Part shown: positions 363-55,530 of the stretch, one piece after another
How the letters are laid out: each line of letters opens with the position of its first letter
Position numbering within the stretch: position 1 is the first letter of the stretch
Assembly (NCBI GenBank): GCA_964035545.1
Contig: OZ037768.1
Coordinates: 17,963,700 to 18,027,699, forward strand
Reading direction: 5' to 3'
Length of the DNA stretch: 64,000 nucleotides
Origin: Bugula neritina
Lineage: Eukaryota; Animalia; Bryozoa
Notes under the pieces: generated by a model
Databases searched by the model: none
Told to the model about the DNA's origin: nothing
The model's input: the letters and a program-made list of their open reading frames with translations, nothing else
Translations under genes and position numbers: made by a program

Positions 363-1490
363 ATTTGAAATCTTGTTTTTTCTGAAAATTCACTAGCTTT
401 TTCAATTCATCTAGCTCTTGTTGTCGTCCATAGATTTGCTCATTTTTCCGGCAGAAATATTGATCATTCTTAGCAGAAATCTGTACCAAATAACTCATTT
501 TGTCTCTTACCTGAAGTAACATGCAAAAAATACTCTAAAAACATTTCAAAAACAATCAAAAGTCAGTCCACAGTAGCTAAATAATACGTTAGACGATAAT
601 TAAAATATTAGTAAAAATAAAATACCAATCTTATTCTTTGTACCGTACAATGGCACTTACTTCAGGTTGAAGGTCGTGAATAACTTTGGGAATAAACTCA
701 TGCAAGACTTGAACTACTCTTTGGATGTCATCGTTGTAGAGCTTTAAAAGTACTTGAAAGACGTCTTCCCATTTTTCTTGAGAAATCAGCTCAGTATAGT
801 GGTCTTGGGCCATGGAGAGTCTAAGACACTCAGTTTGAAATTCTTCTACAGCTTTTGAATGCATTTCTATAAAATATTTAATACAATGTAAGCATTAGTG
901 TCACAAAATGATTGGGCTTCACATTAAAATAAAGACTTAATATAATAGAAATAGTCTAAATTCATCAATGTATATTCCACGGAAGTTAATGAAAGCAGTT
1001 CTTGTTTCCAAGAACAAAGTGTATACAGCTTTCAGTTCCATAAAGCACATAATTAATAAAATGAGAGACATGTATAAATATGTAAATGACTATGTCTATG
1101 TTGAATTTCAACAAAAAACTGCTATGTTGTACTATTATGAAAAACAATTTTTTCCTAGAACAAAGGCAGGACGATTCTTATAAAACTAGCTGGTGTTGAA
1201 CATCGCAAGCTACAGTAGTTTTTAAAAACATAGTATTGGAGTCTAGAGGCTAAATATGACATTCAAAAATGAAAAATATTAAGACCTGTTGTATTTTTCT
1301 AAAATGGGACAGTCTCATAGGTTCAAAGCAAACAGTGAATACCTCTACTCAGTGCCGAAAACACTTGGCCAATCAAGCGTTTGTAGGATACCAACTTCTC
1401 CAACTTTGGCACAAGCACCAAAGACGTATCACTAGTCTCCATAGTCTCATTGTCTACGTCTGGTTGTTCAAAATCCATACAGCCCGCCAT
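363..1490 (-). CDS. 5' part of a DED-like death-fold / STAND (NB-ARC) protein, NLR-like gene A; continues beyond left edge
   Basis: Exons 1490-1343, 866-661 and 510-363 splice in frame (GT-AG; phases 1,0,1): MAGCMDFEQ...SYKRLIGQVFSALSREMHSKAVEEFQTECL...EDVFQVLLKLYNDDIQRVVQVLHEFIPKVIHDLQPE VRDKM...EQIYGRQQELDELKKLV. Aligns to gene B (31159+) with the same intron positions and phases, and carries the pre-P-loop 'YGRxxEL' motif. A probable 5'UTR exon lies at about 1679-1831. Confidence 0.7.
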
Positions 1491-21426: not shown

Positions 21427-24400
21427 CTAGTATAGTTCGTATTGTTCATATTTAGCTGGGGTTTTTGTTTGTCTTGACCGTTGCCATCTAACTGGGGCTG
21501 GATCAGGGTTTGTATTCACTTCTGTAGGAATTGCTGTTGCGGCTGATTGAATCTGTGCGTCTGGAACAGAATGACTGGATACTGGGTCATTGGCGTCTGT
21601 TGGTATTTCAGCTGTAGTCAATGGCTGACTAGCTTCCACATCACTCAGAGGGCGCAAATCGGCCCTGTTTCGCCTCACAGCCATGTCTGTGTCTTTGTTT
21701 GAGACAAGGTATGATCGGTCCGACAGCTGTTCAACCACTCTGCCCTGCTGCCATCTAGTCTTTTGTGACACAAAGTCTCTCAGCAGCACTGGTGAGCCAA
21801 TAGCCAACTTTTGCTAAATCTTTAGCTGATTTATTGTAGCTGCTCTGTACCACTTTTCTCTTGTTAGCTTTTTGCTGTAAGACATTGTTCTTTGGCATGT
21901 CACCTGTAGGAAGAATAGACCTCGTGGAATGCCCAAACATCCTCTGAGCTGGTGATGAGGTCATCCCTGCAGTCAGGGTATTTCGATATTCTAGCAGAGC
22001 CAAATATGGGTCTTCTGCTCTCTTCATCAGCCTTTTGATTATTTTAACTGCTGCTTCTGCCTTCCCATTCGACTGCTGATGTCCCGGAGATGAGGTTGTA
22101 GGGCTGAAACCCCATTCAGTGCTAAATTGAGCAAAGTCGGCCGAGGTGAACTGTGGTCCATTGTCTGATTGCAGCTGGTCAGGGATTCCATACCTTGCGA
22201 AAGTTTTCTTGCAAGCCTTGATTACTGCTCTAGATTGTGTGTCAGATAAAGGTTCACATTCAAAGAAGTCAGAGTAATAATCTACCAGCATCAAATAATC
22301 CTTATGCTTATAGGTTAGTATGTCCATGCCTACTTTACTCCAAGGTAAGTCTGGTATGTCATGGTTTTGCAGAGACTCATGCTGTTGTAAAGGTGCATCC
22401 ATTGCACATGTGACACACTTGTCAGTTTTCATTCGAATGTCCTCAGCCATTTGAGGCCAGAATACCGCATTGCGAGCTCTTCTGATAGTGGCAGCTGTTC
22501 CTTGATGGCTAGTGTGAAGCTTGTTGAGTATCTCACCTCTGGCAGCTATGGGCACAACCAGTCTAGATCCTTTATAAATAATCCCATCTAGTACTCCAAG
22601 TTCATCTTTGTATGAATAGTACGGCTTCACCTCTTCTGGAAGTTGAAATAATTTGTTAGGCCATCCTGAGGTTATCAGAGATTGCAGCTGCACCATTACT
22701 GAATCATTACCCGTATGCTGTTTGATCAGTTTATAGGTCGCTTCTGACACCGGCAGGTCTTGCTTCAGACCCGTTTCGCTTAGGTCAGACATAAATGACT
22801 TTAATTGATCAACTGTGAAAATCTGTTCTTCTGATGTATTGTTCTGGGGTTCACCAACAGGAGCGCGAGACAGCATGTCTGCTGTAACTTGTTCAGAACC
22901 AGGTTTGTAGTGCACTTTAATTTGGTATCATTGCAGAGCCAATAGCATTGATTGCAGGCGTTTAGGCGCTTTGTTCAGAGGCTTCTTAAATATTGTTTTT
23001 AAAGGGTGGTGATCCGTGTGTACAGTTACATCTGGGTTTCCAAAAACGTACTGATCGTATTTCTGCATCCCATAGACGATGGCCAGAAGTTCTAGTTCAA
23101 TAGGTGGATAGTTTTTCTCACTATCTGTCAAACTTCTAGAGCCATAGCTTACTGGTTGCCCCTCTTGTAAAAGTACAGCTCCGAGCCCTTCTAGACTTGC
23201 ATCAGTCTGTACAACTACTGGCTGGTTCATGTTGAAGTATTTGAGTGAAGAAGTTTTCGTGATGAGTTTTTTAATCTCCTCAAATGCTCTCTTTTGATCT
23301 TGGCCCCAGACAAACTCTTCCTTGCTTACACCAATCAGCCGTCTTAGTGGTTCACATTCAGCAGAGCAGTGAGGTATGAACTTTGATAGGTAGTTCACAT
23401 GACCAAGAAACCTCTGTATTTCTTCACTGTTGACAAGGGGCTTCATGTCCGTTATGGCTTGGATTTTATTAGGATCGGGCTTCACTCCATCTTTTGTTAT
23501 CAAATGACCAATATAAGGTAGCTCTTCTAGAAGAAACTTACATTTTTCTTTGTTTAGCTTGAGATTAACCCTACGTGCTCTTGCTAAAAGTTTTTCGAGC
23601 TTTTGGTTATGGTCTTGCACTGCTTCCGCTTGAGTAGCTCCTTTCCCATAGATTAGGATGTCGTCTGCTACTACAGTTACTCCGTCGAGACCGCTAAGTG
23701 CATCTGAGAGTCTCCTCTGGAACTCTTCAGGACTTGAGGACAACCCAAAAGGCATCCTCAGCCATTTGTATTTGCCAAATGGCGTCCAGAATGTAGTTAA
23801 ATCACTGGACTTTTTGCTGAGCTTTATCTGCAGAAAGCCGTTTTTGGCATCACACAGTGAGAATACTCGAGCACCATCCAGCTCGCTAAGCACATCGTCC
23901 AGCGTCGGCATTGGAAAATGATTTCTTTGAATCACTTGGTTTAGGTTGCTTGGGTCTAAACATACTCTCAGTGTGCCATTGGGTTTTCTCACAGCCACAT
24001 GATTGTTTATTCAAGCTGTTGGATAGTCTACTGGACTTAAGATACCTTTCTGGGTGTATGACTGCAATTTTTGTTTGAGATCAGCTACCATCGAGAGAGG
24101 CGTCTTTCTGTTGTGACTTTGTCTTGGGATAGCCTTATCATCTATTTCAATATGGTATTCCCCAGGCAAACATCCAATACCTTCAAAAACCTCTGGGTAG
24201 CTTCCGAGAATGTCATCTAGGCTGGCATTGCTTATTAGGTTAACCCACTCCTCTTTAATGGTTATCAAACCAAGCTGAAGAGCGGCCTCACCAGATAGAA
24301 GGCTGTGATTTCGTGTCTTGTGCACCAGAAAATACAGCTTCTCTCCAGCTACTTCCAGTTCGCATCCTCCTAATGCTCGAGTGATAGAACCACCAAACTG

Positions 24401-25411
24401 CTTTAGCCTTGTCTGGTTGTTGTCAAGCTTTGGCTCACCGAGATCAACAAAATCTTTGTGATTGAAAATGTTACAGGATGCTCCTGTGTCGATCTGAAAC
24501 TGTGTCGGTTTGTGACTATCATTCACACTGGCTCTTATAGTTGTCATCAACTTTTTGTTCTTTCTGATTACCTGTATGCTCAACAATGATTCACTTGAGC
24601 CATCACTGTCTTCTTCTACCATGTTTACTTGCTTCTTTGAGCGACATCGAGATCCCCAATGGTTATACTTTTTGCAGTTATGACACTGGTGACCGTATGC
24701 AGAACACTTTCTGGGAGGGTGAGACTGCCCACAGTTGCCACAACTTCCTTTTGAAAAGTTTCCTGTTCGAGTGGACCTTACTGCATTATCATCATCATCT
24801 TTGCTTGGTTTATTAGGCTTCTTTCTGGAACCGATGAACTGCACTGATTCTTCAGACTGGATTGCAGCCATGTCATTCCTTGAATTCTCAGCAATACGAC
24901 ATTTCTTTATAGCTTCTTCTAGCCCTAAGCCAGTATCCCCGCTGGCGTCATCAAATAGCTTCCTTCTTAGTTGGGCATCGTTGATGCCCAGGAGTAAAGC
25001 TTGAAGCATGAAATCGTCATACATTGTGTCCAGTTGACACTCTCGAGCGATTTTGTGAAGCGAGGTGACATATTCATCAATGTTCATGGTATTCTGCTTG
25101 GTTGATAACAGTTGATGTCTTTTGACTACTTTATTAGTGCCTCGTTGACAAAAAGCATCAAACTTTTCCACAACATCAGCATAGACTTCTTTTGATTTAC
25201 CATCTGAGAAAGTGAATGTTTTGAATATGTCGTTGCCTCTTGGGCCTATGCATCTTAACATAATGGCTACTTTGACTTTATCATCAGAATTTGCTTTCTC
25301 AGCTGCTGTGAGGAATAGCTCAAATTCTTCTTTAAATCTCGTCCACTGGTTGGACAAGTCAGAGCCATCTTGAATAGGCTTGGGGGCTAAAAAGTCAACA
25401 CTGATACTCAT
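21427..25411 (-). pseudogene. Gypsy gag-pol polyprotein (gag zinc knuckles, protease, RT, RNase H, integrase), disrupted
   Basis: CGNCGQSH..C/CHNCKKYNH..C, DTGAS, VADD, TDAS..GLGAVL, H..H..C..C and SDNGPQF..SNGKAE. In-frame TGA at 24011-24013 (PTA*INN, normally W) and 22928-22930 (LQ*YQ, normally R); frameshift near 21810. Confidence 0.95.
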
Positions 25412-30400: not shown

Positions 30401-31158
30401 TAGTACTTTTCCTTCACAGATATTTCCAAATTAACTTAATCTTTTTTAACGTTTTCCAGTATTTACATTTAATTAATTGACTTAGTGACTAGAGTAGAGT
30501 TATTATGATTAGAAAAGGTTTATGATAGTCTTTCCTGAATAATTTAATGTGTTCCTCGAAGTACTGGTGTTGTAATTTTTACTCTTGTGGGTTTCAGTGT
30601 ATAATCAAGTTAGTGCATTGCTTATAATCCAATCAATCCCGCAATTGTAGTTTCAGATAATAAAGAAGTATATTTACACAAATAAGTACACAAATAAAAC
30701 TCTACATCTACTCAGATATTCTACAGCAATTCAGTACAGTGTTTCTAGTTTGCCTGTCTACTAACAACTGTTTTACTAAGCGGGAAGCCACAGTCCTAAT
30801 AATAACTGATGATTCCTATTGGAGGGTTTGTTGTCTCGGGTCATCTTCCTACGCACGCAATGACCCCATATTACAGTTAGAAGGGAATTAGTGCTTTCCC
30901 CTTTTCAATTATGATAGTAGTCCATCGAGCCACCACACCGGTCTGTTTCGTTCACGTCAAACATTAATTTAATATGGTATCATTTTAGCTTCTATCATTG
31001 AAAAAGGTAAGAGAACATCTTGGCATTCAACTGAAAAGAGATGGTGTTATCAGTGTCTAGTCTAGTTTGCTGACAGCTATTTCAAAATTCAAAATGGCTC
31101 TAGTAGAAAAGTTTTGGCTCATTGGTGGAAGAGTGTGAGAATTCAATTGGAGCTCAAC

Positions 31159-34100
31159 ATGGCCTTGTCTAGGTTGGGCACAGGCAATTACAGAAATGTT
31201 ATAACAGAAATTCTCAAAGAAATTAGTGGAGGTAAAGCAATTTTACTAATTTTATTGCAAAGCTATGGTGCTATTGTTATGTGCCTATTTTTTTTTAAAG
31301 TTTTCTATTTTCTATAAATAAAATGGAATATATAGCTTTATTTTATGACGTGTTTTTAAATGTCAATTTTCTTTATTATTTATTTGTAATTAAAAGTTTG
31401 CTTTTCTTAAATGTACAGAATAAAATTTATTATGTCTGCTGACATTGCTATTCATCACAAAACCTTAAAACTATTCAATGTTTTACATTATTTATGTATA
31501 TAGAGGTGGACAGCATTGTACTAAGAAAGCTGAAGCCCGAGGTTGTTGCAGAAGTAAGGCATGCTCGTATTAGGGACATCTTTGCCGCTACTACGTTCCG
31601 TCAGTTATATGCTCTGATTCTTAAAGACTTTGACAATGACTTGAAGGCATCGGTGTTAGCCATCAATAGAATGATTGTACTAGTGCATAAGAATCTTAGT
31701 CCAGCAGTAAGTTAATGGCATGTTTGCAGTGCAGTATGGAAGTAGTGTGTGTACACATTTATATAACATAATCTCTCTGTTATGGAGAATGGCTCACTAC
31801 TAGTCATGTTAGTGTGATTCTCAGCAACTGTGATGAAGTGGTGTTCGTAAATTCCAGCAATCTAACATTTTTATTAAATAGTGGAGACTATTTTTTTCTA
31901 ATGTTGATTGTTGCGATGCTGCTTGATTTAAATTGTATTAACATCTTCAAGAAAAGAATAATTATCTATTGTGTATAAAGTTCTTTTACATAAAAATGAA
32001 AGAAAAGAGGGCACAATTTCCTGTACAGATAAATAATGCAAACAGGGTAAAAATATATATATTTCCTGTAGAAAGTAAATGGTTGTCTGCTTGTGTCTCA
32101 ATATATCTAACTTGTAATTTGTATGGATAGTTGGTAAGCAAGATGAAGAGCTTTACTCGCAGGCTAACACAACAACAGCTGGGCTTTAAACTCGGTGAAG
32201 AATGTGAAGTATATGGCCGAGTAGATGAGCTGAGGACTCTCCGAGAATCTGTTGACCAGGATGAACTCAAATGTATGGCAGTAGCAGCACCTACTTTTCT
32301 TCAAAATGTTGTGCATTTGTGAGATACAAAATATGCACTTTAGATAATTAAGTTTCTTGGTGGAGTGTAAGCAAATATATTTAAAATCAATTGTAGCGAC
32401 TAGTGATTTTATGGCTTCATGTTTAATATTTTCAGATACTAATGATAACATGTTGTCTACTTATTTCTAAGACCATTAAAAAAATTCATTTTTGTTTGAT
32501 GAATTATCCATAACTAATAAAATCAAATTAAATTTTTTTATTCGACCATTAGAAAGTAGTACATGTATAATTTAATCTCTACAAATGCATTATTATGCTA
32601 TATAATTGTAGTGGTTAATGTTTGGGGACAGCATGGCTTTGGTAAAAGCTATATAGTCAAGAACTTGGCATCTAGAATGTTTAATTGGGAGCCCTTTGGT
32701 GTAGAATACACAGATTGCAGGTAGTGTAATGATGTAGCAAGCAATATAATAAAGTAGTTGTAGTGATGGAGAAATTGAGAAAAGTCTGTATTAGATAAAA
32801 AGAATTAGCTAAAAAAGTCACTTTCTTTCGAAAATTTCAATCCGCACTCGAAGCTAGATTTTGTAAAGAAAATTAAAGAACTTGGGCTATTGAATTTTTT
32901 GACTGCACCTAAATGAGTATAATACATGTGTTTGAAAATAAATGTAAATGTATTGAGTTTTTTTGTGGGTATAACCAGCAAAGGAGCCTGTGACCATTTT
33001 AATGTGCATGAGGGGAGGTGCGTTTCTGATGAAAATGGTAAATTTACAAAAGTACACTGTAATGTAATGGAGTGATCTAGTCCATCTCAATAATTGAAAA
33101 AGGAGTAGCATTTTCACATGGAGAATTAGACTGATCTGCACACTAAGTGCATATTTCAGCTACAGGTAAATGTAAATAAATATATATTGTTGAACTCTGT
33201 AATGGGGTTTTGTTGTATGTTATGTTTTAGCAGCTTCCGTGTACTTTAGTTCGTATATTTCTACTTACATTTATGTCTTTGTAGTGTCACAGTATGTTAG
33301 GTTTTCTGGTTAAAGTTTTCTCATCACAAAACCAATCGGAAGTAATTTTTAGGTTTAGTTTTAAATATTTAGTGCATAACCTGCTGCAAACTGAATTAAA
33401 TATTTCCTTTATCGTAAACAAAAAAAAATAAAGAAATCTTTTACTACAACAAAAACATAAATTGTATCGTTTAATAATTGAAATTCTTAGGCTCCATCCA
33501 TTATAGAAAACAATTGAGCCAATGGTATACTAATCGATTCAATTGTGTTTATAAACTAAAAATTAATTATTTTTTTAACACTGCAAGCTGTGCTGTGTTT
33601 AATAACAATCACACGTACACATTTTAGTGGTCTGCAAACACTAAGCTGCTTGTTCACACGAATTCTGGTGAGATTACCTCCTCAGCGTTATTCTAAAGCA
33701 GTAGCTAAACCTAACGAGCTTTTGGGACTATGGCTGCGTTACTTGGAGCAAAAATACCAAGGTTTGTCACATATAGCATTGAGGTGCATGAGCGACGCAA
33801 TGGTATGGTTTTCTGAAATACTCTTATATATGCTGTTTTGGAGTGTATAATGCTCAGTGGTCTATAATGTTCTGTAGTATATAGTATTCTGTAGTATATA
33901 ATGTTCTGTAGTATATAATGTTCTGTAGTATATAATGTTGTGTAGTATATAATGTTTTGTAGTATATTTTGTTCTGTAGTATATAATGTTCTCTGGTGTA
34001 CAATACTTCACAGTCTATAATAATTTATAGTATATAATACTCTATGGTAAGACATGCTACACAGTACATGAAGTTTGTTCCTATAATTTGGATTATTTTA

Positions 34101-37100
34101 TAGTCATGTTTGTAAGTTGCTATCACTGTGGTGGTTTTGTTGTAGAACTCAGATCTCTAGCTAATGAGTCTTTCACACTTCATCTAGTCATAAATTCATG
34201 GGTGTGATTTTAGCTTTCTGTAGAATGTAATAGTTAATGTGTTGATTGTTGTAGATGATGAGCGTGTAATAATTATATTAGACAACTTATCGGAAATGTT
34301 AGTAAAAAGCTCCTCTCTTTGTCACGCTTTAATTGGAACGGTTGATTACTTGCAGAGAAAGGATACCAAGGTGTTGCTTTTTGATGTTACTAGTTTCACT
34401 TTTGATGCTTGATAACAATTATTTTAGTAGCACTAGACATATGGCATGGTGTATAGCTTCATGTATTGTGTTGTTTTAATTTTTTTTAATTTGCTATTTT
34501 TTTAATTTCTTAAGCATGTTGCTGTAATTCCTATCAAACCTGTACAAATAATCAATATGATTATTTTGATGCTACACCCAACCATATCTTCCGGTTGTTG
34601 TTCATGAACTCCTGTGAAGTTACAGAGCTGATAAATTCTTACAGGTAACCTTCATAACTACCGCTACTTCCAATCTTGCTGACACGGCAGCCACACAAGA
34701 TAACACGTGCTTTCACCAGTGTATCAAGGATATTCATGTTAGTAAGATGAGTTCCATAGATGCTCAGAAGTTTTTCACAGTAAGTATACATTAATTTGTG
34801 TTGCGTTGTGCACATTTGGGCAGAGCTTTAACCTACACCAGTTGATGCTAAGTTGTACGATGATTACATTAATTAATATTTTTCAAAACTAATATTATGC
34901 AGTATTATTTGCTAAAAGTATTTTCTTTTTTTCATTAGGCAGATGTTTCAAAAAGTCTGCCATCCCAGGTTGCAGAACTGTGGAGCCTGGGACATCCTTT
35001 CTCTTTGATCTTGCTCAACATACTGGCTGACCGAGATGTCATGTTCACTTCTCAACTTCTTGAAAGTCAGCAGATCAGCGATCCGTTTGAATGGATTCAA
35101 CAAACTCTCTCGCTGACTTTTAATCAGCTTACCAAACAGCAGCAGAGGGTTCTTCTAACTGTAGCCATGTTTGAAGGAGAGGCTCAATTAGGTGCAGTAC
35201 ACCAAGTACGTTTTATTTCTAGCTGGTAATAAAAAATACCTGCTATTTGTAGCTGAACTAATTTCTTACGAAGCTTTAATAACACTTTTTTCATCTATTT
35301 GTATGGTTATGTTATTATTTAGCATGATTTGTCATAGTATTATTACTCCAGATAAAGTTAACATTTCCCTTATGTGAGTGTAATTGTAGGCTGTCTAATA
35401 TAATTATAATATAAATGTTGATATTTTTTGTTAGATAATGGGATCATCTCGGTTATCTGATGTTAACGAGTTTTGTGAGAAAATTCAGAAAGATTTCAAC
35501 ACAGGGTTTTGGCTATCCTTTAGTACCAGTGATGTAGCTGTAGAACGCTTTGATGAAACTCTACTTCATACCTCACACTCACTTGTTAAACAATTTCTCT
35601 TAAACTTCATCAGTTTGAACTGTGAGGATGGAACAAGCGATGAGCACCGATTTATACGAATGGTAAAAGTCTGCAGTTCTCTTTGATTTTACGAAATCTT
35701 GCAGTCTCTTTGCAGGAACTATCTCTTGTAAAAGCAAGTGTGAAAAACCAACATAGAAACATTTTATCAATGCAAAATCTTGAGGGCTTGATCTCAATTT
35801 AAATTTCTCAAACACAACTTGAAATGTACGTAATTAACTAAAATTATGACATTTATTCAGTGAACTCGCTCACACAATCAGCCAGTCAATCTGTAGGCAA
35901 ATTTTGTTACAATCACTGTAGGATTTTTAGGCTGTATTTTCGTTTTTTAGGTTAAAGAAAATTTTATTCATTACCATATTAACATTCTTGTGGAAGTTGG
36001 GAAAAATTGTATTGAGAACCCAGAAAAATCTTGCAGGCTCTTGATGAGGAATAAAACAAATATTACACAAGCTTTTAAAATTATATCTAGTGGATTTGGC
36101 ACTTCTCTAACACTCCTTAGTACCCTCGAAAAAAGCCCGAGATCATCAGAAGACATAGGCTATCTGTACCTTTGCTTGTATCAGAACCCTGGTTATTTTG
36201 AGGAGCACCTGGTGGAATCACTAGAGCAGCTTGTCACTTCAAACCGTGTCGTAGCTTCAGCTTCTCAGTACTACTGGACACTTTTCAGACTGGTTCTTGT
36301 GGCAGAGGGCAAGTGGAAGGTTCTGGAATCTGTAGTACAAGATGGCAACTCACACGCTTCTCACTTGTGCAAATCCTTGAATATCTATACAAGGGCTGTT
36401 CTAGCATCACACTTGCAAGACATACCAAATGCTGATAAGTATGACAAATTATCTTGTGCGCTTAAAGAGATAAAAAAAGAAAAAAGGCAAAGTGAACGAA
36501 AACAAGTACGGAACTTCTCAACAGTGACTAAATACTTTAGCATACTTATTCGCCTGTCTATGTTATCTGCTGCTCAATTAGGTAAAGCACAGTCTTCTAC
36601 AGCCATTAAGAAGCTGTGTGAAGATGCCAACAAAGATGCATCATATGTCGAGATTTTAAAACCACTGTGAGTAAATCATGCTGCTATTAAGAAACTTTCG
36701 AAATTATAATTTTATTAAAAGCTGGTTATTCAATTAGGTTCTAAGGTACATATTTACAGCAGATATTCAAATTTAGTTTCAAGTCATCTGACACACAAGC
36801 AATCATAGTTTTACATACTTCTATATGGACAGGGTTTTGAAGGCTCTCGGCAAAGTGTGTGGGAACAAGGAGAAGTATTGCAGGTCTGCGCTGAATCACT
36901 ATAAAAAGATGCAGCAGGGAGAGCTTCAAGAAGCGGCTGAGTGTATGATCAACCTCACTGAAGTCTCATTAGAACGGTAAGTTATAATTTTATATTTTAA
37001 AAATTTATATATTATATATTATTCGATCATAAGGTTTGATGTGAAATTATTTGGTTTTATAATTTGACGACGTAATGTAACATTCCATTGAATCACAACA

Positions 37101-39548
37101 ACCACTAAAGCTTCCTAACTGTTTTGAAATTACAGTATTACTGGAAATTTCATTAAAATATGATTAAATCATTAGGATATTTAATAAATTTAGCTGAACT
37201 ATTGCTGTAACAGTTAAAATCTTAACTAGGGGTTCTTACTTGGGAAAATTTTTAATACTTGCTCTAAGTTAATTAAGATTGTCAAATGAAGCCCATACAG
37301 TTAGTTGAGTAAGTCAAGTCAGTTAGTTGAGCAAGTCAAATTGAGTCAAGTCTAACATTTAGGTACGGTAAGTCCTCCATTTAAGCACTCACTCAATCTG
37401 AGCTGTACTCAGCTCTGCTAATCTAGTCATGTCTACAAACTTGCAATGGGAATTAACTACTTTTATTCAAAAAGTTCTCAAATTCTGTTGTAGGTGAATA
37501 GCACCTATATGTTGATGTAAATATACTATCTTTGTAGAGGGTTGAGTGTAATTAATCGTGATGAACTAAAGCAGCATATTGATACCAGTATTAAAATCAT
37601 AGAGAGGAATTCGGTGCTATGCCCCTTGAACTATCTTCTATTCAAAGCACTAGTTTTAAAGGGTGATAGCCGCTATCAGTCTGCTAAGCTCTACCATCAA
37701 ACTCACAGTAAGTTTATTGTATTTGTCATTGTTCATATTTTAGTTTTAATAGTGTAGTAGTTTTGTGGGTAGAATGTAATTAAGCAGGGAGCATAACTCC
37801 GTAATATAAGAAACAAGATAGGTTGTCCGTGTTGAGTAGAATAATCTTTATTATAAGCTATAAGAGTATCTGTGTGTGTGTCTTGATCAGGCGAGCTCCA
37901 GTAGTAGACTGATCTACTCTGTGAGCTCACCTCCTTATATACTGGGAAAAAGTCCCTTTGAGAAACCTCTGCCAATCGCTCCAAGAATCAGGGTTCCCGT
38001 GAAGATGTCCGATCGCATTCGATTGAGTTCGATCGGTTCCAACAATCGAATGTCTCGAACTCAGTCTGAGATCCCGACATCGTCACACTTCCGATTCTCG
38101 GCTTACATAATTGCATAAAATTTACTATATTAAATGAAAAAATTGGGCAGACAAATCTAAATTATTATACGCTAAAAATCACTACATGCACTAATATATA
38201 TTAGTGCATGTGTGTTAGACATATTAGACTGTTGCTGTTGCTAACTACTGCAGCTGTAGAAGGTTTTGTAATGTGGAGGGAGCTTCTAGTGAGTTTACCA
38301 AGCTCCTTCATGTGTGTACTTGCAAGATCTAATCTTCACTCTAAATAGTGTTTTTAACTATTGTTTCCAGAGATGGGTTAATATCTTGCCTCTAGAGCTA
38401 GTAACTAAACTACCACTGAAGTTTTATTCCTCTAAATGAAAAACTGTGTATGCTAATCAATGGCCTCTAGTGCAGAATATCGAAACTTTTGATCCTGTTT
38501 TTAGCCTTGAGCAGTGAAAAAGAAGAGTTAAAAAGTGCTCTAGTCAACCTTGAGAGGGCTTACAATCTGCTTCATCGTGATAACACATCTTGTAGCTTGC
38601 ACTTAGCTGAAAATGTAAAATTTCTAAAAAGACTGAAAGATATCCTCCCTCGTATACTCAGTTACTGTAGACCTAATGTTTCTCCTGAAACATTACAGCA
38701 AGTGACGTCTACTTTACAGGTAATATGTAGCATTAAAATTTACACCAAGCTATCAATTTTTGCTAGTATTGGGATAGTTATTAATACGGTAGTTTCATAA
38801 ATTAATTTCTTAGGTCTTTCATAGACTAGAGTCTTCATTGAAGCTCTATGATTTTCTTTTTCAAAACTGTGCTTCAACAGGTAAATATTATTGTGTTGTT
38901 AATGCTTGCCACATCGAAGTATTTTGGTCTAGTTTTCTCGTTTTATTTTGAACATTTATAACAACAAATTGCAAACAGCATCATGTAAATAGGTTTTGTT
39001 GATGTACATGAAATAATTTTGAATGCAACAATTGTTTTGTACATTTAATGAACAGGTTTGTTATGCTGCTAGCTCAATCAGCTAAAGTTGCTATATTTAG
39101 AAAACTGGATGTCATACTTTATTAAGAATATTGAACTTGTATTACAAAGATTTACTATTTCTAACTTATCAACACAGTAATTTATTGTTGCAACTTAAGT
39201 TGAAAATTATAATTTCTCTGACCAATTCATGTTTTTCCAAATTAGATTTGTGATTGCTGTATATCTGACCATTTTGTTATGTATGCTTTGTAGACACTGC
39301 TAACACAAGCATCAGGAAGTAGTAGTATTGAACTAAAAATATCCACTGGCAGTAGTCTTGACATCTCAGCCCATGTCAAACACATTCGTTTTCCAGAAGT
39401 TAGCGCAGAGTTTGCTGAAGCCACTACTACTTCCGTACAGGAAACCCACATTGCAGATTCTGTAGACACTTTTAAACTGCCTATACAGCCCAAAGACTCT
39501 GCAGATATCAGTGGTTGCAGCCCGGTGAAAATTCCACGCCAAGAATAA
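31159..39548 (+). CDS. NLR-like STAND protein: DED-like N-terminus, NB-ARC NTPase, helical/TPR-like C-terminus (gene B, ~910-1000 aa)
   Basis: In-frame GT-AG exons 31159-31231, 31504-31706, 32131-32272, 32612-32720, 33628-33761, 34255-34370, 34645-34779, 34939-35205, 35435-35662, 35951-36666, 36833-36976, 37538-37707, 38505-38719, 38814-38880, and a last exon from 39294 (stop at 39322 or 39548 depending on frame). Motifs in order: VYGRVDEL, Walker A VWGQHGFGKS, Walker B VIIILDNL, RNBS-B KVTFITT, RNBS-C SKMSSIDAQKFF, GxP GHPFSL, RNBS-D LSLTFNQLTKQQQRVLLTVAMFEG, MHD-like SHSLVKQF. Confidence 0.85.
33863..34045. repeat. Minisatellite, ~18-bp unit (intron of NLR-like gene B)
   Basis: (TATAATGTTCTGTAGTA[TA])n, about 8-10 degenerate copies. 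Confidence 0.85.
37753..38186 (-). mobile_element. Probable solo LTR (434 bp)
   Basis: TGTAGTAGTTTT...AAAAATCACTACA termini, CpG-richer than the flanks, AATAAA on the minus strand; no clean TSD found. Confidence 0.5.
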
Positions 39549-40303: not shown

Positions 40304-42645
40304 TTACTTATCAACCATGCTGATCATCTTTTCTCGTACCAGCTGAGCTTGATCTTTCAGTCGCTGTGCTAGAAGCTCATACTTGGCTCTCTGCCAACAG
40401 AGAAATAAACAGCACATTAACAGAGTAATGTCTATTGTTACAAGACAAAATAATGCCCATTAATACTACCACTATCACTTTCCAAGCATTATGGGAATGG
40501 ATTTTTTATTCAATGTTTGGAAACAGTTGCATCTAATGAAACCACAACTATAAGTTAATGCAAACCGCAACGGCAAATCCATAGGTCTAATGGGAAGCAA
40601 TGGAAATGCAATGAATGCAGAGTAATATATTGCATCTACATTAATTTTACATACAGCTAAACTAATGCTGAAGTCTAAATTTTTTATTTCTAAATGGACA
40701 AAGTTAGTTATTAAACTATAATAGATTTGATAACACAAAATAAATAATATTTTTTTCTTTTATTCAAACATTCTTGTTTCAATTAAGGTCACAAAAACAA
40801 TTCAAAAATTAACTCAAAATTAAAATTGCATGACAAATTGAGTGCTTGGTCAAATTTAAACTTACTATAACATTTTTCTGTCGATGAACTTCCATTTCAA
40901 GGAATTCTTTTCTAGTAATATCTGTTTCATAGATCCTAGCCTTTTTTAAAAACTCACACTTTCCTCTAGAATGTGATACATGCTCTTCCCTGTAAAAATA
41001 TATCAATATTAAATATTTTGTACGTAAATTCTTCAACAACCAAAATGCAAAAAAAACAGATTTAAATTATGTGAAATACTGCAACTTAAAATGCATTCAG
41101 TTCTTATTTTATTATATATATTTATATTGTCTACTTAAATTTTAAAGGCCATTACGGCTTGCTAGTAATAAAGCAGCTGGTGTACTACTAAAAAAAACTA
41201 ACATTTTAGTGTGACCTCACAAATAATAGAAGTTCTAGATCCTATACAACGACAGTTTTTCTACTAATAAAAGAATATTCAAAATAAATACAAGTATGCA
41301 TTATATACCTTTACATTTATTTTTACTATACTACAATTATGACATTGGAACTTCAAGTGCAACTGTAACAGTCTAACTGGTACAGTTAAATTAATTTCTA
41401 CTATGGTTCAGTTACCAAGGATCATCTTGCTCTTCCCATCCATCCAACTCTTTGCAACAAAAGAAGCATTTGGCTGCATCAGGAGACTCGTCAGTTGGTG
41501 TGTGCACAAAACCAGCTTCCGCCATCTAAAAGAGTACAATGCTTTTATAGAACATTCTTTAGGTGAAAAGAGTCTCTGGTATTTTAATACTTTACATAAA
41601 CTTTGTGTTTATGTAGCACACGACTGCAAAACCTGATGCAGCTCTCTATTAGTTGGAACTTAGAGAGAAATGAACTAAAAGTGCATAGCAAAATTACTTT
41701 GGAATTGCACCTCGTCAACACACCCAAATTCTATGCCAACATGAAATTTATTACTGTAAACTAAAACAACATCGCACATTAAGGCTACGAGATTTTTAAT
41801 AATTTAAACTTTAGGCAAATCTTGTTCCAAATTTTCACAAACCTAGGAAACTTTTATAATAAATAATTCTAAAATGTTAAATAACACCAGTTTAATGATA
41901 TTTAGCATTTAATCAATATATTGGAAAATCAAAGTTCCAATTTCTGCATATAGCAGCAAGTATTAGCACTTAATCTAGGCTTATTTTCTCTTCTCAAAAT
42001 CACTCTGTGCCTCATGAACTAAAACCCCATAACATTGCAGCTCAAATTGGTAGTAGCTATTAGGCTGACAGAGATTTGATGGATTACTAACAAAATTAGA
42101 TGGCAGTAAGCAAAATCTAGAAGAAAAAACAATAAGACACATGGCTCGCAGAATGTAGATTACTTAGGTTGAAAATGTAACAACAATCAGTAACAAATGA
42201 GTTCAATACCATACAATCAATTAGCTAATATTACGATTCATAAAAAAATTTATGTACATGAACAAGATCCAAACTTCATATAAATATATTCAATGTTAGA
42301 ATTGGCTATTAAGTCTACTATGAACCTTTGGCAATGAATATATATTGATATTGGCATGACTACGTAACAATACTTTGTCGTAGTAGTTACACTTACTGCT
42401 TCAGCTGTACATTTTATTTTCAACTTCCGTTTGGTTCCTTTGGCTTTCTCTTCAAATGGCCAATTTACAAAAGTGTTTTTTCTATTTTCTTCAATAACAT
42501 ATTTAAGATCTTTCAGTATTGCCATTTGTGCTTGCAGAACATCTTTTTCACAACTACCATTAATAGAGAATGATTCGAATCCACTTGACCTGGCAGAAGT
42601 ATTGGTTTGGGCCAACAGTGATGTATTCGATTCCAAGTCTCCCAT
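40304..42645 (-). CDS. BIRC5: Survivin (single-BIR IAP, chromosomal passenger subunit), ~189 aa
   Basis: Exons 42645-42397, 41525-41416, 40989-40866, 40390-40304: [10 protein letters not shown]...[56 protein letters not shown] followed by a C-terminal helix. Confidence 0.93.
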
Positions 42646-50533: not shown

Positions 50534-53500
50534 TTACCATTTTCTGGTTATGGGAAGGAAATGAACTGCCCCTGTAAGATTGTCTTCAATATTTGCTCTT
50601 ATGTGGAGGGTGTGTCCATCTTTTATGTAGCACCTCACACTTTCTGGTCTAACACTGCTTGGCAAGTCAAACATTTTAGTAAATTCATTGTGAGTTTTTC
50701 GACCACCCACTCTGGTTTCAACGTGCTTTCCATATACTTTGACTTTTCGGCCATCAACAGTAACAGTGATGTCTTCTGGCAAGTAGCCAGAAACGGGTAG
50801 AGTGAAATCCAACGAACTGTAGGCATCATTAGTAAGGGAGGCAGAGTTGGAAGCACTTCTGTGATTTTGAGAAGTAGGAACAGGATCACAGTTGTAGCTG
50901 GTCAAAGCATTGGAAGACATGGCATCAAATGGTGAGGCCATGAAACTATTGCTCTGTCCCTGTGCTGCCAAGTGATGGTCAGATGATGTTAAAGGTGGTG
51001 GCGAATATTGCCTTATAGGTAACTGTAGGAAGGAAAATATAAAAGTTATTACCATAAAATGACATAGATAAGTTTGACATAATCTTAAATGGCAAAGTAA
51101 TATACAAGCATATTTACACAGTACAGGCTATAGGTGTGCCACATCTGTAAAACTAGTGAATGATATCAATATTTAAGGATTCTAACTTTAATTGTTGTGA
51201 GAATAAGGCAAAGTTTTTATTTCAACTGTGTAATATATATGAATTTACTTATTTACTTTATTTTTTAATAGTGAAACATAATTTTTATTTCTTTTGAAAT
51301 ATAGCTATATAGACGAGTTTGTTTTTACACATACATATTTCCATATTTTTGAAAATGTATTGAAATGTGAGCTACAAAACAGGCTCTTGACCATTTCCTA
51401 TGTTTGCTATGAATACATATAGTGTTTAGCACCACTGGGCACTTATATTATACTAGATTGAGAACAGTTAAACTTAGATAATCCCCTATAAAATAGTTCT
51501 GTGTTAATGCTGTGTTAATTTGTCACGGTTTGGTTATTTCTGACCAAAACCTCTGCAAACAGCATATATAAATGTTTTTCTGTGATGTAGAATTGTCATG
51601 GTTACATTAGATACAACATATCTCTATCCTTGTTGCTATGGCACACAAATAATTGATTTCAAGAATTACAATGATGTTAACTAAGAACTTATAGTAAATG
51701 AAGTGTTGAAGCTGCATTCGAGTTACAGTCAGAAGTTAGAAAATTAGAAACTCATTATTATATATTTTAGGATGAGTTGGTGGGGTAAATCACAATTTAA
51801 TTGTAAAGCACTTGAGAGTGCACATTACACGCATTTATCATATAAATAAAGCTTAATGCATGTATATCTATGAATATAAAGAAGAAACTTTGCTTCCCAT
51901 TAAACTCATCAAGTGAAATTAAAAAGTTATCTATTGCTTGCATAACTGTGAAATTATTTTCCCAATACAAGCTCTAAAAATCAACTTCAGCTAATATGAT
52001 ACAATGAAGCACCACATATAGTGTAATTATATAATATATTATAAACATAATTATCAGTGACTGCCCTAACTCAAAGCTGGTCAAATTGTCCAATTTTAAA
52101 ATACAACTATAAGTCAATCATTAGAATTCCAATATTTGACCCTTGTTTCCTGCCATTGTCAAGAGTTGAAACATGAAACAAACGTTTGTGCAGTCGCCGC
52201 TATAATGGTAGACCTCAAATAAATTAATAGAATTTTCAAAGATAGATGTTAGGTAGACTTACTGGGTTATAGTGCGGAGGTTTGATAGGAGCCGTTATAC
52301 TGAGTATGCCATCTCGAGAAAACACAGATTTCATCATGTTGATCTGTATATCTGCAGGGAGGTCAACACTTCGAGTGAACTCTCGGTGAGACGTCGAGTT
52401 GCCAACTTTGTCTTCATGGGTAGCTGTTAATAACAACACATGTGTTTATCGAGAGAGAGAAACATTACAAATGTCAGCTACTATACAATACCATTGTCAT
52501 TGAGAAACATATGCATGCTATGAAATATTTATAATCTACAAGAACTCATAACTTGGTACACCTGGTATCTACAGCTAATCTCTAAGTACTTATAGGCTTA
52601 CATAACACACATGCCGATACAAATAAATTACTACACTATCTTTAGTCTCTATACTATTAATAATTTCTAGAAATTTCTAAGATTGGCGACATTTGTAATC
52701 AAAGAATTAGCTGACATGTTTTTAATAATTGAATTGTATAACTCTTTTGAAAATATTTAAAATTATTTATACTTTTAGTAAAACTTTTTTAAATTACAGT
52801 TTATATTTACCACTAATAATCAGTTTTCCATTTTTGGTTGTAAGACTAATGTCATCGGCTTTAAAATCTCTCATGTCAAACTGAACAGAAAATTCAGGTT
52901 TTCCCAGGGGATTCTACAACAATAACTACAGATTGTAAGAAAACAAAAATCACTTTGCATGTGGCAGACATCATATTTGAATGTGTAATCCTATTGTTGC
53001 AAGATATATTCTGTATTACTATATTATGCAGTAGCAACGCTGAAACACGTAATAAGCATGTAATAGTATCAATAAAGTAAATATTATATAATTTTTCATT
53101 ATATCAACTGTCAATAGTTTTATATATAATTGCCAGTACCTATAATATGTGGATAAGTTCAGCTTGACACAACATTATATTATTGAAGCTGCAAATGATA
53201 AACAAATTATATAAAGCTGTATATTGGAAGGGAATGTGGTTGAGGAATACAAATTATACAACATGTTGCAAGTGGGAAGAGAATATAGCAAATAAAAGAA
53301 GCTAATGAGTTATTGCTATGGAGCATAATGCAGGTTTTAAAGTGGACACGAATTGAATATAAGAGTACTTTACTCCTAAGAAATTGCCAAACTAATATAA
53401 CCACTGAACTGAAACTATAGTTCAATGAATATAACACTCATAAGCACTGGCACTAGCAAACCACACCTAACGTGTATAATATAGGCCTATGGACAGAATT

Positions 53501-55530
53501 CTTGTTGAAATCTGCTGTTAGGATGTTGCATGCTGCCGATTATAATCTGAGGAGACTAGGAGGCAGCAAAAGTGTCTTACAAATTTGTTATCTGATGTCT
53601 GCTGCCTGGTAAATATGCTAATGCTGCCAAGTTAGTGTACTGCCAATAGCAAAACCTATTTAGGTGTTAATGTTGCGTTGCAAATGTTATATGGGTAAAG
53701 TACGTGGAACCTAAGCTAAACTGATGACTCACAGTAGTAGAAACACAGTCTACATAATATGATCTTGTTGTTCGCATTGATTGCGATCTTCTCAGAGGTC
53801 TCTTTTTCTACGTTGGTAGAATTGTGAAAAGCACAATAAATACATCAATACGGACGGACAATAAGTAAAACAATGTGATACCTAAACCTAAGAGTTTTCT
53901 TGCTTATAATTATTCAGAATAAAAAATGTTGCCATAAATATTATTTGATACAATTATATATATGGGCTGCTGTAATCCTGTTTTGATATACCCAAACAGC
54001 ATGTCAACGAATGCCAGGGGATCGAATTAATTTCTAGTCCTACATTAATATAAGTTTTATATTTATGACAGCAAACAAAATAATGACCGAGTACAAAAAA
54101 ATAAAGCAGTAATGATAGCAGCAATTATAAAAACAGGAATGATTTCAATTAATTATAATAAGTATGTGAAATTGAAATATATTCAACGTTTACTCAACTC
54201 TAATTAAATGTTTCAACATAAAAAACTTGAGAACTTTCAACCGAATATTTGAAAGAAAAATAAATTACCTTTGCAACGGTTCTGTTGCTCTCAATAGAGC
54301 CTCCGAAGTCTGAATGGGGTAGAAATTTGAACATGTCCGTCTTTTTGCTCCTTAATCTGTTCTGCCAGTCAAGCCTGTGTATATCAAGCTCAGGGGTAGT
54401 GAGAGAGCCCAGGTGATCCTGATGGTCAAACCAGCGGTTCATATGAAAGTCATCAAAGGTGTCATCGTATATGTTCACAGGTATAAGCAGCTCATCATGT
54501 TCTTGGCTTCTAGGATACCCTACAAATTTATTAAATAAGTTAAACTGTTGCATTTATTAAGACATGTACCTTATACTCAGCCTAAAATGAATTATAAATA
54601 AATATTTGTTATGTTTATGTATTTGAGGTCAGGGTTATGCAATTGATAACTTTATGATAAAATAAGAAAGCAAGAAATAATATAATGTTGACAAGAAAGC
54701 TAAATAATAAAAAGAAGATAATGGCGCTCGATTGCGTCTCACTACGCTGCTCACTTACTGTCACCAATAGCACTTGTTTTAGTAGTAGTTTCTTCGGTTA
54801 TTGGCTGACCCGATCCAAATTTCCGAGTAGTCGTTGTCGTCATATTGCTGTTGTTAGAACTTCCACTTTGTAACGGTACTTCGTAATAAGGTTGAACATT
54901 GCCAAATCTTTCTTCTCTTACTCTAATTTTCAAAGGATCTTGAGCAGTCTCTCCGTCTTTGTAAGCTTTACCAGTCGTAATGTCTCTCTTGAGACTCTCA
55001 AAATCATCTTCATAGTTGGCTGGCGTGCGTCCAATACGTTTAAACTGTCTCTGAATGTTTTCAAGTTCTTGGACAGCCTGGGGATTCGTTTTTGTAGTGG
55101 TAGTAGTCACAACCTTTTTAACGGTTGAACCACTGCCAGTATTAGCGATTGGCTCCACGTGAAGAAGGGTTGGTCTTGGAGACGTTCCTCCACTATTAGA
55201 AGATTTAGAGCTATAAGAGTAGGTGCTCGACCCACAACCAGAGTCCAAGTTGGGTTTCAAAGCATTATCCATTTCTCTTTTCATTTTTTCCATTTCTGGA
55301 TCTATTGGAAATGCAGAGCCTGGACCAACACTTGTACTGGTGCGGGGTGTAGAGCTCGAACTGGTCGACTTGTAGCTGTAAGAATGGCTGCCTGCATCGT
55401 GACTTGGAACAGGTGCCCCCATCATAGCCTGCATCTTAGCATTTTGAAATTCAGCCTCATCAAGCAGCTCAGTGTGAGGCATTCTTGATCCGCCACGAGA
55501 ACGAGTTTTATAAGAATAGCTGTAAGACAT
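50534..55530 (-). CDS. Large small-heat-shock protein with two alpha-crystallin domains (p40/major-egg-antigen-like), ~590-616 aa
   Basis: Exons 55530-54759, 54519-54269, (53807-53733, optional 75 nt), 52913-52811, 52423-52263, 51022-50534. ACD1 FSVQFDMRDFKADDISL...REFTRSVDLP...FSRDGILSITAP; ACD2 LPVSGYLPEDITVTV...EFTKMFDLPSSVRPESVRC..DGHTLHIRA; Ser/Thr/Tyr-rich N-terminus. Confidence 0.88.

Follow-up and report, generated by a model that had tools for sequence, protein, structure and literature searches.

A STAND ATPase gene with a probable DED-like N-terminus and TPR-like repeats in the bryozoan Bugula neritina

The window analysed here is a 64-kb stretch of DNA from the bryozoan Bugula neritina (positions 17,963,700 to 18,027,699 of OZ037768.1, a 24.8-Mb contig, C4, of the 216-Mb genome assembly that we searched). 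It carries on its plus strand a gene at 31159-39548 (window coordinates, used throughout), with two paralogues, A and B, upstream on the minus strand. With a probability of roughly 0.6, we read its product as a bryozoan STAND signalling ATPase in which a DED-like effector precedes a switch of nucleotide-binding domain (NBD), helical domain 1 (HD1) and winged-helix domain (WHD), followed by an arm, a TPR-like sensor and a disordered tail, and which would recruit a DED partner. This reading draws on the gene structure, the motifs, homology and the fold of the relatives, and on FADD-like and tandem-DED caspase genes being encoded in the same genome.

Thirteen exons with GT-AG junctions, running from the start ATG at 31159 to 38719, chain in frame with zero stops and with sense codons at the junctions, and a last exon (39294-39548) attaches to exon 13 in phase 0, giving a predicted 14-exon gene with its stop codon at 39546-39548 and a product of 968 aa. 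GC content is ~0.41 in the exons compared to ~0.30 in the introns. The RefSeq protein XP_067951006.1 of Watersipora subatra is encoded by exactly 14 coding exons, and its phase string matches that of the Bugula gene (1,0,1,2,1,0,0,0,0,2,2,1,0). The earlier note on this DNA had proposed 15 short exons; the spliced gene was recovered, but the count was not, the extra exon being probably a doubtful cassette at 38814-38880. This segment has good splice signals, but its GC content is intron-like (0.33) and it has neither homology nor a counterpart in the relatives; spliced to the acceptor at 39294 or 39056 it meets a stop within 10 codons, and it stays in frame only via the weak acceptors 39310/39316. 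In the paralogues and in the syntenic W. subatra relative, exon 13 is spliced straight onto the last exon. Because of the shared phase string, the skipping of 38814-38880 in relatives and the broken frame, the sequence indicates a real and intact gene, most likely of 14 exons and not 15. An exon-5 donor at 33802 was discarded for a phase clash, 33761 being taken instead, and additional exons in 39056-39176 were rejected for stops or phase clashes.

The window protein was searched exon by exon, with natural full-length relatives standing in as proxies for the whole protein. On a profile built from four such relatives and compared against 130 intron decoys, exons 1-10, 12 and 13 were collinear, with scores of 20.7 bits for exon 4, 39.9 for exon 8, 40.4 for exon 9, 83.7 for exon 10 and 19.8 for exon 13, the best decoy reaching 0.3 bits; exons 5 and 11 were weak or misplaced. 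That the gene is a silent or decaying duplicate could be argued from its degenerate motifs and from exon 10, where named relatives are 23-35% identical and no database protein exceeds 35%, but 968 codons free of stops and frameshifts, 13 canonical introns in conserved phases and synteny kept with Watersipora make such decay highly improbable.

The ordered NB-ARC motif series described in the earlier note was confirmed, every quoted motif being found in order from YGRxxEL in exon 3 to SHS in exon 9. Exon 3 (32131-32272) encodes helix 6/linker and the pre-P-loop YGRVDEL. Walker A (GQHGFGKS) in exon 4 (32612-32720; Pfam AAA/NACHT-type P-loop hints, E 0.06-0.18) and Walker B (VIIILDN) in exon 6 (34255-34370) are intact, matching the patterns GxxGxGKS/T and hhhhD(D/N), and between them exon 5 (33628-33761) would supply the ISM helices, with a fitting frame and phase and a weak sequence match. 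The DN of Walker B is common to the gene and P0024 (W. subatra XP_067933269.1), the paralogues having DD. Exon 7 (34645-34779) holds sensor-1 (FITTA) and RNBS-C (KDIHVSKM), exon 8 (34939-35205) HD1, with its GxP as GHP, and RNBS-D, and exon 9 (35435-35662) the winged helix, where the MHD-equivalent His in SHS aligns to a winged-helix His invariant in five relatives. The sensor-1 Arg is replaced in the gene (TTA), as had been stated, while P0024 reads TSR (VTSR) and four other relatives TSQ/SSQ. A switch that lacks this Arg may still work, because the active oligomer of RPP1-type plant TNLs with a TTE/Q sensor-1 has ADP bound (PMC9104254). Those receptors likewise have the Arg replaced but differ in their TIR effector and LRR sensor; the comparison is one of analogy only.

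The Pfam NB-ARC profile (PF00931; cut-off 23.5 bits), proposed earlier as a check, matched P0007 (25.6 bits) and P0012 (26.8) above the cut-off but P0027 (23.3) and P0024 (19.9) below it, and single window exons gave no match; the corresponding search of the genome was empty because of the introns. AAA_22 was present in 4/4 full-length relatives and AAA_16 in three. An AlphaFold model of P0024 (mean pLDDT 73) had the STAND-TPR protein PH0952 (6mfv) as its top Foldseek match (E 1.7e-8), with CED-4 and Apaf-1 next (E 8e-8 to 1e-7) and MalT and plant NB-ARCs also found. With VIA, the same model scored Z 20.6 against resting NRC2, 20.2 against MalT, 17.4 against PH0952 and 16.2 against Apaf-1. Together, the motifs and the predicted fold of the relatives strongly suggest that the gene product is a STAND NTPase of the NB-ARC/AP-ATPase class.

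Downstream of the core, exon 10 (35951-36666) would form the arm and first helical repeats, exons 11 (36833-36976) and 12 (37538-37707) are TPR-like, and exon 13 (38505-38719) carries the last TPR-like repeat (ERAYNLL) and capping helices. The TPR-like repeats of the earlier note are consistent with structure, the P0024 model having a C-terminal helical solenoid and, as a whole, PH0952 as best match, and its ESM Atlas feature neighbours at 0.97 being mostly TPR-STANDs, but sequence profiles show little of them: TPR_12 appears in 3/4 relatives below cut-off (22.5 vs 30.1 bits; best E 1.3e-4), and exon 11, which fits in phase, gave only faint Pfam TPR_2 / SHNi-TPR hints (E 0.17-0.27). We therefore regard a helical, TPR-like C-terminus as moderately supported, weak by sequence and consistent by structure. 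The tail that follows the solenoid, in the last exon, is rich in Ser/Thr/Asp/Glu and unalignable across the family, and the stop codon overlaps an AATAAA. Six of eight family tails end in K-K/R-x-K/R (L010, L007, P0007, P0012, P0024 and P0030, two of the six being near-identical B copies), a pattern of the SV40 type that is possibly a nuclear localization signal (NLS) directing import; it is absent from the window gene and from a second tail of paralogue A.

The N-terminus was predicted by modelling residues 14-112 of W. subatra P0007, with the exons of the window gene and the paralogues as alignment rows. Exon 1 (31159-31231) would provide death-fold helix 1 (YRNVITEIL), matches the N-terminus of P0024 (50% over 18 aa) and is followed by a phase-1 intron as in the relatives, and exon 2 (31504-31706) would provide helices 2-5, with HKNL at the probable RxDL position and LKPE at the FL-motif position. 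The model has six helices (pLDDT 80). Compared against 48,161 PDB chains, 10 of its top 11 matches were DED or pyrin domains (PYD), with 84-91 of 99 residues aligned and Z 6.0-7.1 (NLRP7 7.1, vFLIP 6.9, FADD 6.5, caspase-8 6.4, PEA-15 6.3), CARDs reaching up to 5.6. A second structural comparison placed the FADD DED first (Z 7.1; death domain 3.8), and Foldseek gave TM 0.56-0.60 with PEA-15, but at E ~1. Pyrin domains are a vertebrate offshoot, and hence DED-like is the fitting name. The consistency of this ranking makes it likely, as far as the model of a relative can tell, that the N-terminus is a DED-like death fold.

Several observations weigh against the overall reading, and most concern this domain. 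The gene model was built from genomic DNA only, and all structure tests used W. subatra relatives, 20-30% identical to the window protein. No DED (PF01335) was detected by Pfam in the window exons or the relatives, nor by a PDB sequence search with the N-terminus, and hhalign to the DEDs of the genome itself gave 2% probability, so that the DED-like N-terminus of the earlier note stands on the structural ranking, moderately, and not on a sequence profile. Values of Z <8 are common among helical bundles, the observed ones lying within the chance range. The death-fold match of P0007 was not reproduced in the full-length P0024 model, whose N-terminus is of low confidence, and ESM Atlas searches of the N-terminus yielded unrelated helical proteins and no death fold. 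The FL motif is absent and RxDL degenerate in the gene, leaving canonical DED pairing unsure. The earlier note was right that the RxDL motif is missing; the position reads KNL in the gene and HDL, PDL, RDM or KDI in its kin. This absence is not decisive, because the Bugula FADD DED likewise shows no RxDL.

An N-terminal bundle that does not work as a death fold, or serves as a lineage-specific adaptor, with a non-apoptotic and possibly nuclear output given the NLS-like tail of the kin, would agree with the lack of a DED signal at sequence level, with the only moderate Z and with the 6/8 tails that carry the basic end after an unalignable acidic linker. We nevertheless think it rather unlikely, since death folds lead the structural ranking with CARD and death domains scoring under DED/PYD, cnidarian proteins of this architecture have a DED that Pfam detects, and the window copy is without the basic tail.

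Candidate partners for a DED-like effector are encoded in the same genome. A FADD-like gene (C1:6357006; L016:1471-2148) is a single 225-aa open frame with a DED and a C-terminal half resembling a death domain, and a caspase-8-like caspase with tandem DEDs lies at C5:221-227 kb; this search found each as a single gene. Using as template the STAND proteins with arm and TPR sensor (PMC6468293), and by analogy to MalT, PH0952 and Apaf-1, the STAND ATPase would rest as a monomer that has ADP bound and is kept closed by the arm and the TPR sensor. A cytosolic ligand, microbial or damage-derived, would bind the TPR groove and open the switch, upon which the protein would oligomerise. Its clustered death folds could then bring in FADD or the caspase-8-like protein as DED partner, leading to cell death or immune signalling. 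With the sensor-1 Arg absent, oligomerisation would probably proceed without reading the ATP gamma-phosphate, like in the RPP1-type TTE/Q plant receptors. At least 179 caspase-domain matches, many of them clustered on C1 and C6, were also seen genome-wide, a number that by sequence points to a large caspase expansion.

Among known systems, APAF-1, CED-4 and Dark share with the Bugula gene the NB-ARC core with its death fold, probable in Bugula, and the same motif series but combine CARD and WD40, compared to DED-like and TPR in Bugula. APAF-1 also retains its sensor-1 Arg265. An APAF-1 orthologue was rejected, as no WD40 was found and CARD scores (Z 5.3-5.6) fall under those of DED/PYD; likewise a bona fide animal NLR with NACHT and LRR was rejected, NACHT being below cut-off and below NB-ARC in the relatives and LRR being absent. 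PH0952 and MalT (6mfv, 8bob; PMC6468293) have the same NBD-HD1-WHD-arm-TPR fold as the P0024 model but are prokaryotic transcription regulators with a helix-turn-helix output and no death fold.

The closest likeness is to cnidarian and placozoan proteins. The earlier note had considered NB-ARC with TPR typical of fungi and bacteria, a view contradicted by the death-fold-NB-ARC-TPR proteins described in cnidarians, placozoans, sea urchin and amphioxus. Homologues of Apaf-1 with DEDs in Nematostella, and with TPRs in place of WD40, were reported in 2007, and the combination of a DED, CARD or death-like domain with NB-ARC and TPR is described from Nematostella, sea urchin and amphioxus (PMC2246300). 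In Trichoplax, 39 NB-ARC genes join an effector that is CARD or death-like to a WD40 or TPR end (PMC6321704). Hydra viridissima has 103 and Acropora 57 NACHT/NB-ARC-TPR genes (PMC7642931), and coral NB-ARC proteins are mostly TPR-ended (PMC10236652, PMC4083563). The top Atlas structural neighbour of P0024 was a 75-member cnidarian cluster (DED 77%, AAA_22 91%, TPR_12 79%), aligned over residues 8-832 at TM 0.59/0.68. Proteins of Hydra, Acropora, Nematostella and Trichoplax share with the bryozoan gene the three-part architecture, with an NB-ARC-class NTPase and probably a TPR sensor and a DED/death-like N-terminus, as well as tandem clustering. The bryozoan gene differs in its bilaterian host, few copies, DED and TPR under Pfam cut-offs, lost sensor-1 Arg and added acidic tail, with an NLS-like end in its kin.

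No report of such genes in bryozoans was found in the open-access literature. The architecture as such will not surprise specialists; what the present case adds is a lophotrochozoan to the cnidarians, placozoans and basal deuterostomes in which the death-fold-NB-ARC-TPR receptor design was described. Such genes escape Pfam through their short exons and divergence and thus end up as "uncharacterised" in standard annotation, and the open-access literature has so far only catalogued the class, naming neither ligand nor partner. A three-gene family together with single FADD-like and caspase-8-like genes in a culturable bryozoan offers a tractable place to ask about a DED-based apoptosome.

Only 27 matches were obtained when an exon-10 profile was run against 1.84 billion representatives, and those with names, all of them uncharacterised proteins, come from cheilostome bryozoans: XP_067951006.1, XP_067950962.1, XP_067933269.1 and XP_067933132.1 of W. 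subatra and one cluster, EB796_013734-40, of B. neritina. For this subfamily the term "lineage-specific" used in the earlier note holds. The four W. subatra proteins and EB796_013740 have the same exon phases as the window gene; XP_067933269.1 (P0024) differs from it in retaining the sensor-1 Arg and the basic tail. The gene of P0024 is followed by BIR and HSP20 genes on the minus strand, as the Bugula gene is by survivin and HSP20, and P0024 is the best match to the gene at the N-terminus and Walker A. Because of the synteny, the N-terminal match and the shared Walker B DN, P0024 is its positional orthologue; the exon-10 tree leaves both the place of the gene and orthology unresolved. A word search with exon 10 found nothing, but such searches were uninformative here (two alignment queries retrieved P0024 only and missed the very sequences they contained). 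Whole-genome profile searches, whose counts are lower bounds, gave no locus beyond the gene, A and B.

The relationship to these two paralogues opens another reading, in which the diverged copy (TTA, a proline at the FL position, HKNL and no basic tail) is a regulatory or decoy partner that hetero-oligomerises with or guards A and B, in the manner of cFLIP among DED proteins or of the sensor NLR in plant pairs. The gene stands head-to-head with paralogue A, shares only 21-27% exon-10 identity with A and B, sits on a long branch of the exon-10 tree (1.63 changes per column) and has lost the sensor-1 Arg still present in its syntenic W. subatra counterpart. We consider the partner role unlikely, if worth keeping in mind: ~30 kb of transposons lie between the starts, the gene has kept Walker A and the WHD His, the Arg is missing from most kin too (TSQ), and the 10 kb upstream of the W. 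subatra gene contain no called paralogue. Equally doubtful is a broader conjecture of a bryozoan-specific STAND subfamily in which a DED-like domain and a TPR sensor are joined to an ADP-holding switch devoid of the sensor-1 Arg and, for most members, to a conserved C-terminal NLS; these proteins would act as nuclear DED-apoptosome-like sensors in a bilaterian, while the diverged copy would partner the head-to-head paralogues in the cytosol or in a regulatory role.

Paralogue B was the only paralogue testable for selection, by comparing two Bugula assemblies. It matches EB796_013740 with 94% identity in exon 10 and 85-91% at the DNA level over long blocks, values that place the searched genome in Bugula, probably as a sibling within the neritina complex. 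It is under purifying selection, with a faster-evolving sensor and no positive selection: dN/dS is 0.09-0.32 per region and does not exceed ~0.5 in any exon, and dN is highest in the distal TPR exons (pN 0.12 and 0.07 vs 0.01-0.05 elsewhere). These data bear on the suggestion of the earlier note that the gene is an allorecognition receptor, here taken as a determinant of colony fusion or rejection, as with some fungal NLRs. A colonial animal, a tandem locus in flux (an extra B copy in the GenBank assembly, a duplicated tail in A) and the fast distal TPR exons speak for it, but the paralogue count that had been called for gave three loci only, with no allorecognition-type expansion, selection on B is purifying, and the allodeterminants described in animals, such as Hydractinia Alr and Botryllus fuhc, are mostly surface proteins, so that we give this idea very little credence. 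No allele of the window gene turned up in a metagenome scan. The extra copy in the GenBank B. neritina contig (L014:32980-34489; called gene from 33460, 519 aa) is B-like, has no equivalent behind B in this genome and may reflect copy-number variation or haplotype duplication.

The first three exons of paralogue A lie at 363-1490 (minus strand), its start at 1490 facing the gene across ~30 kb of mostly transposon DNA. Behind it, the last four exons are present again in a diverged version (C4:17952738-17954880, minus strand), possibly an alternative C-terminal sensor cassette. Both paralogues (A, L010:8444-8550; B, L008:5324-5435) encode YTDCR in frame in a short stretch that separates the Walker A exon from the one after it; YTDCR is the end of exon 4 in the window gene, and the annotated model of the paralogues counts the stretch as intron.

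On the other side, the STAND gene is tail-to-tail with a survivin-like single-BIR gene (40304-42645, minus strand), followed by pieces of an HSP20 small heat-shock gene (50534-55530, minus strand; Pfam HSP20 E 7e-7 for the open reading frame 50534-51055), the BIR-then-HSP20 arrangement being kept in W. subatra. An upstream open reading frame of 14 codons (~31095-31139, plus strand) ends ~20 nt ahead of the start codon, and intron 5 contains a tandem repeat at ~33860-33990 with units of ~19-21 bp. The transposon block between paralogue A and the gene (3932-29862) holds several reverse transcriptase/endonuclease frames of the long interspersed nuclear element type and a long terminal repeat-type element with gag-protease, reverse transcriptase and integrase frames (21427-25411, minus strand). 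Past paralogue B are Ataxin-2-like exons (C4:17924450-17925971, minus strand), which we take to be of the LsmAD type.

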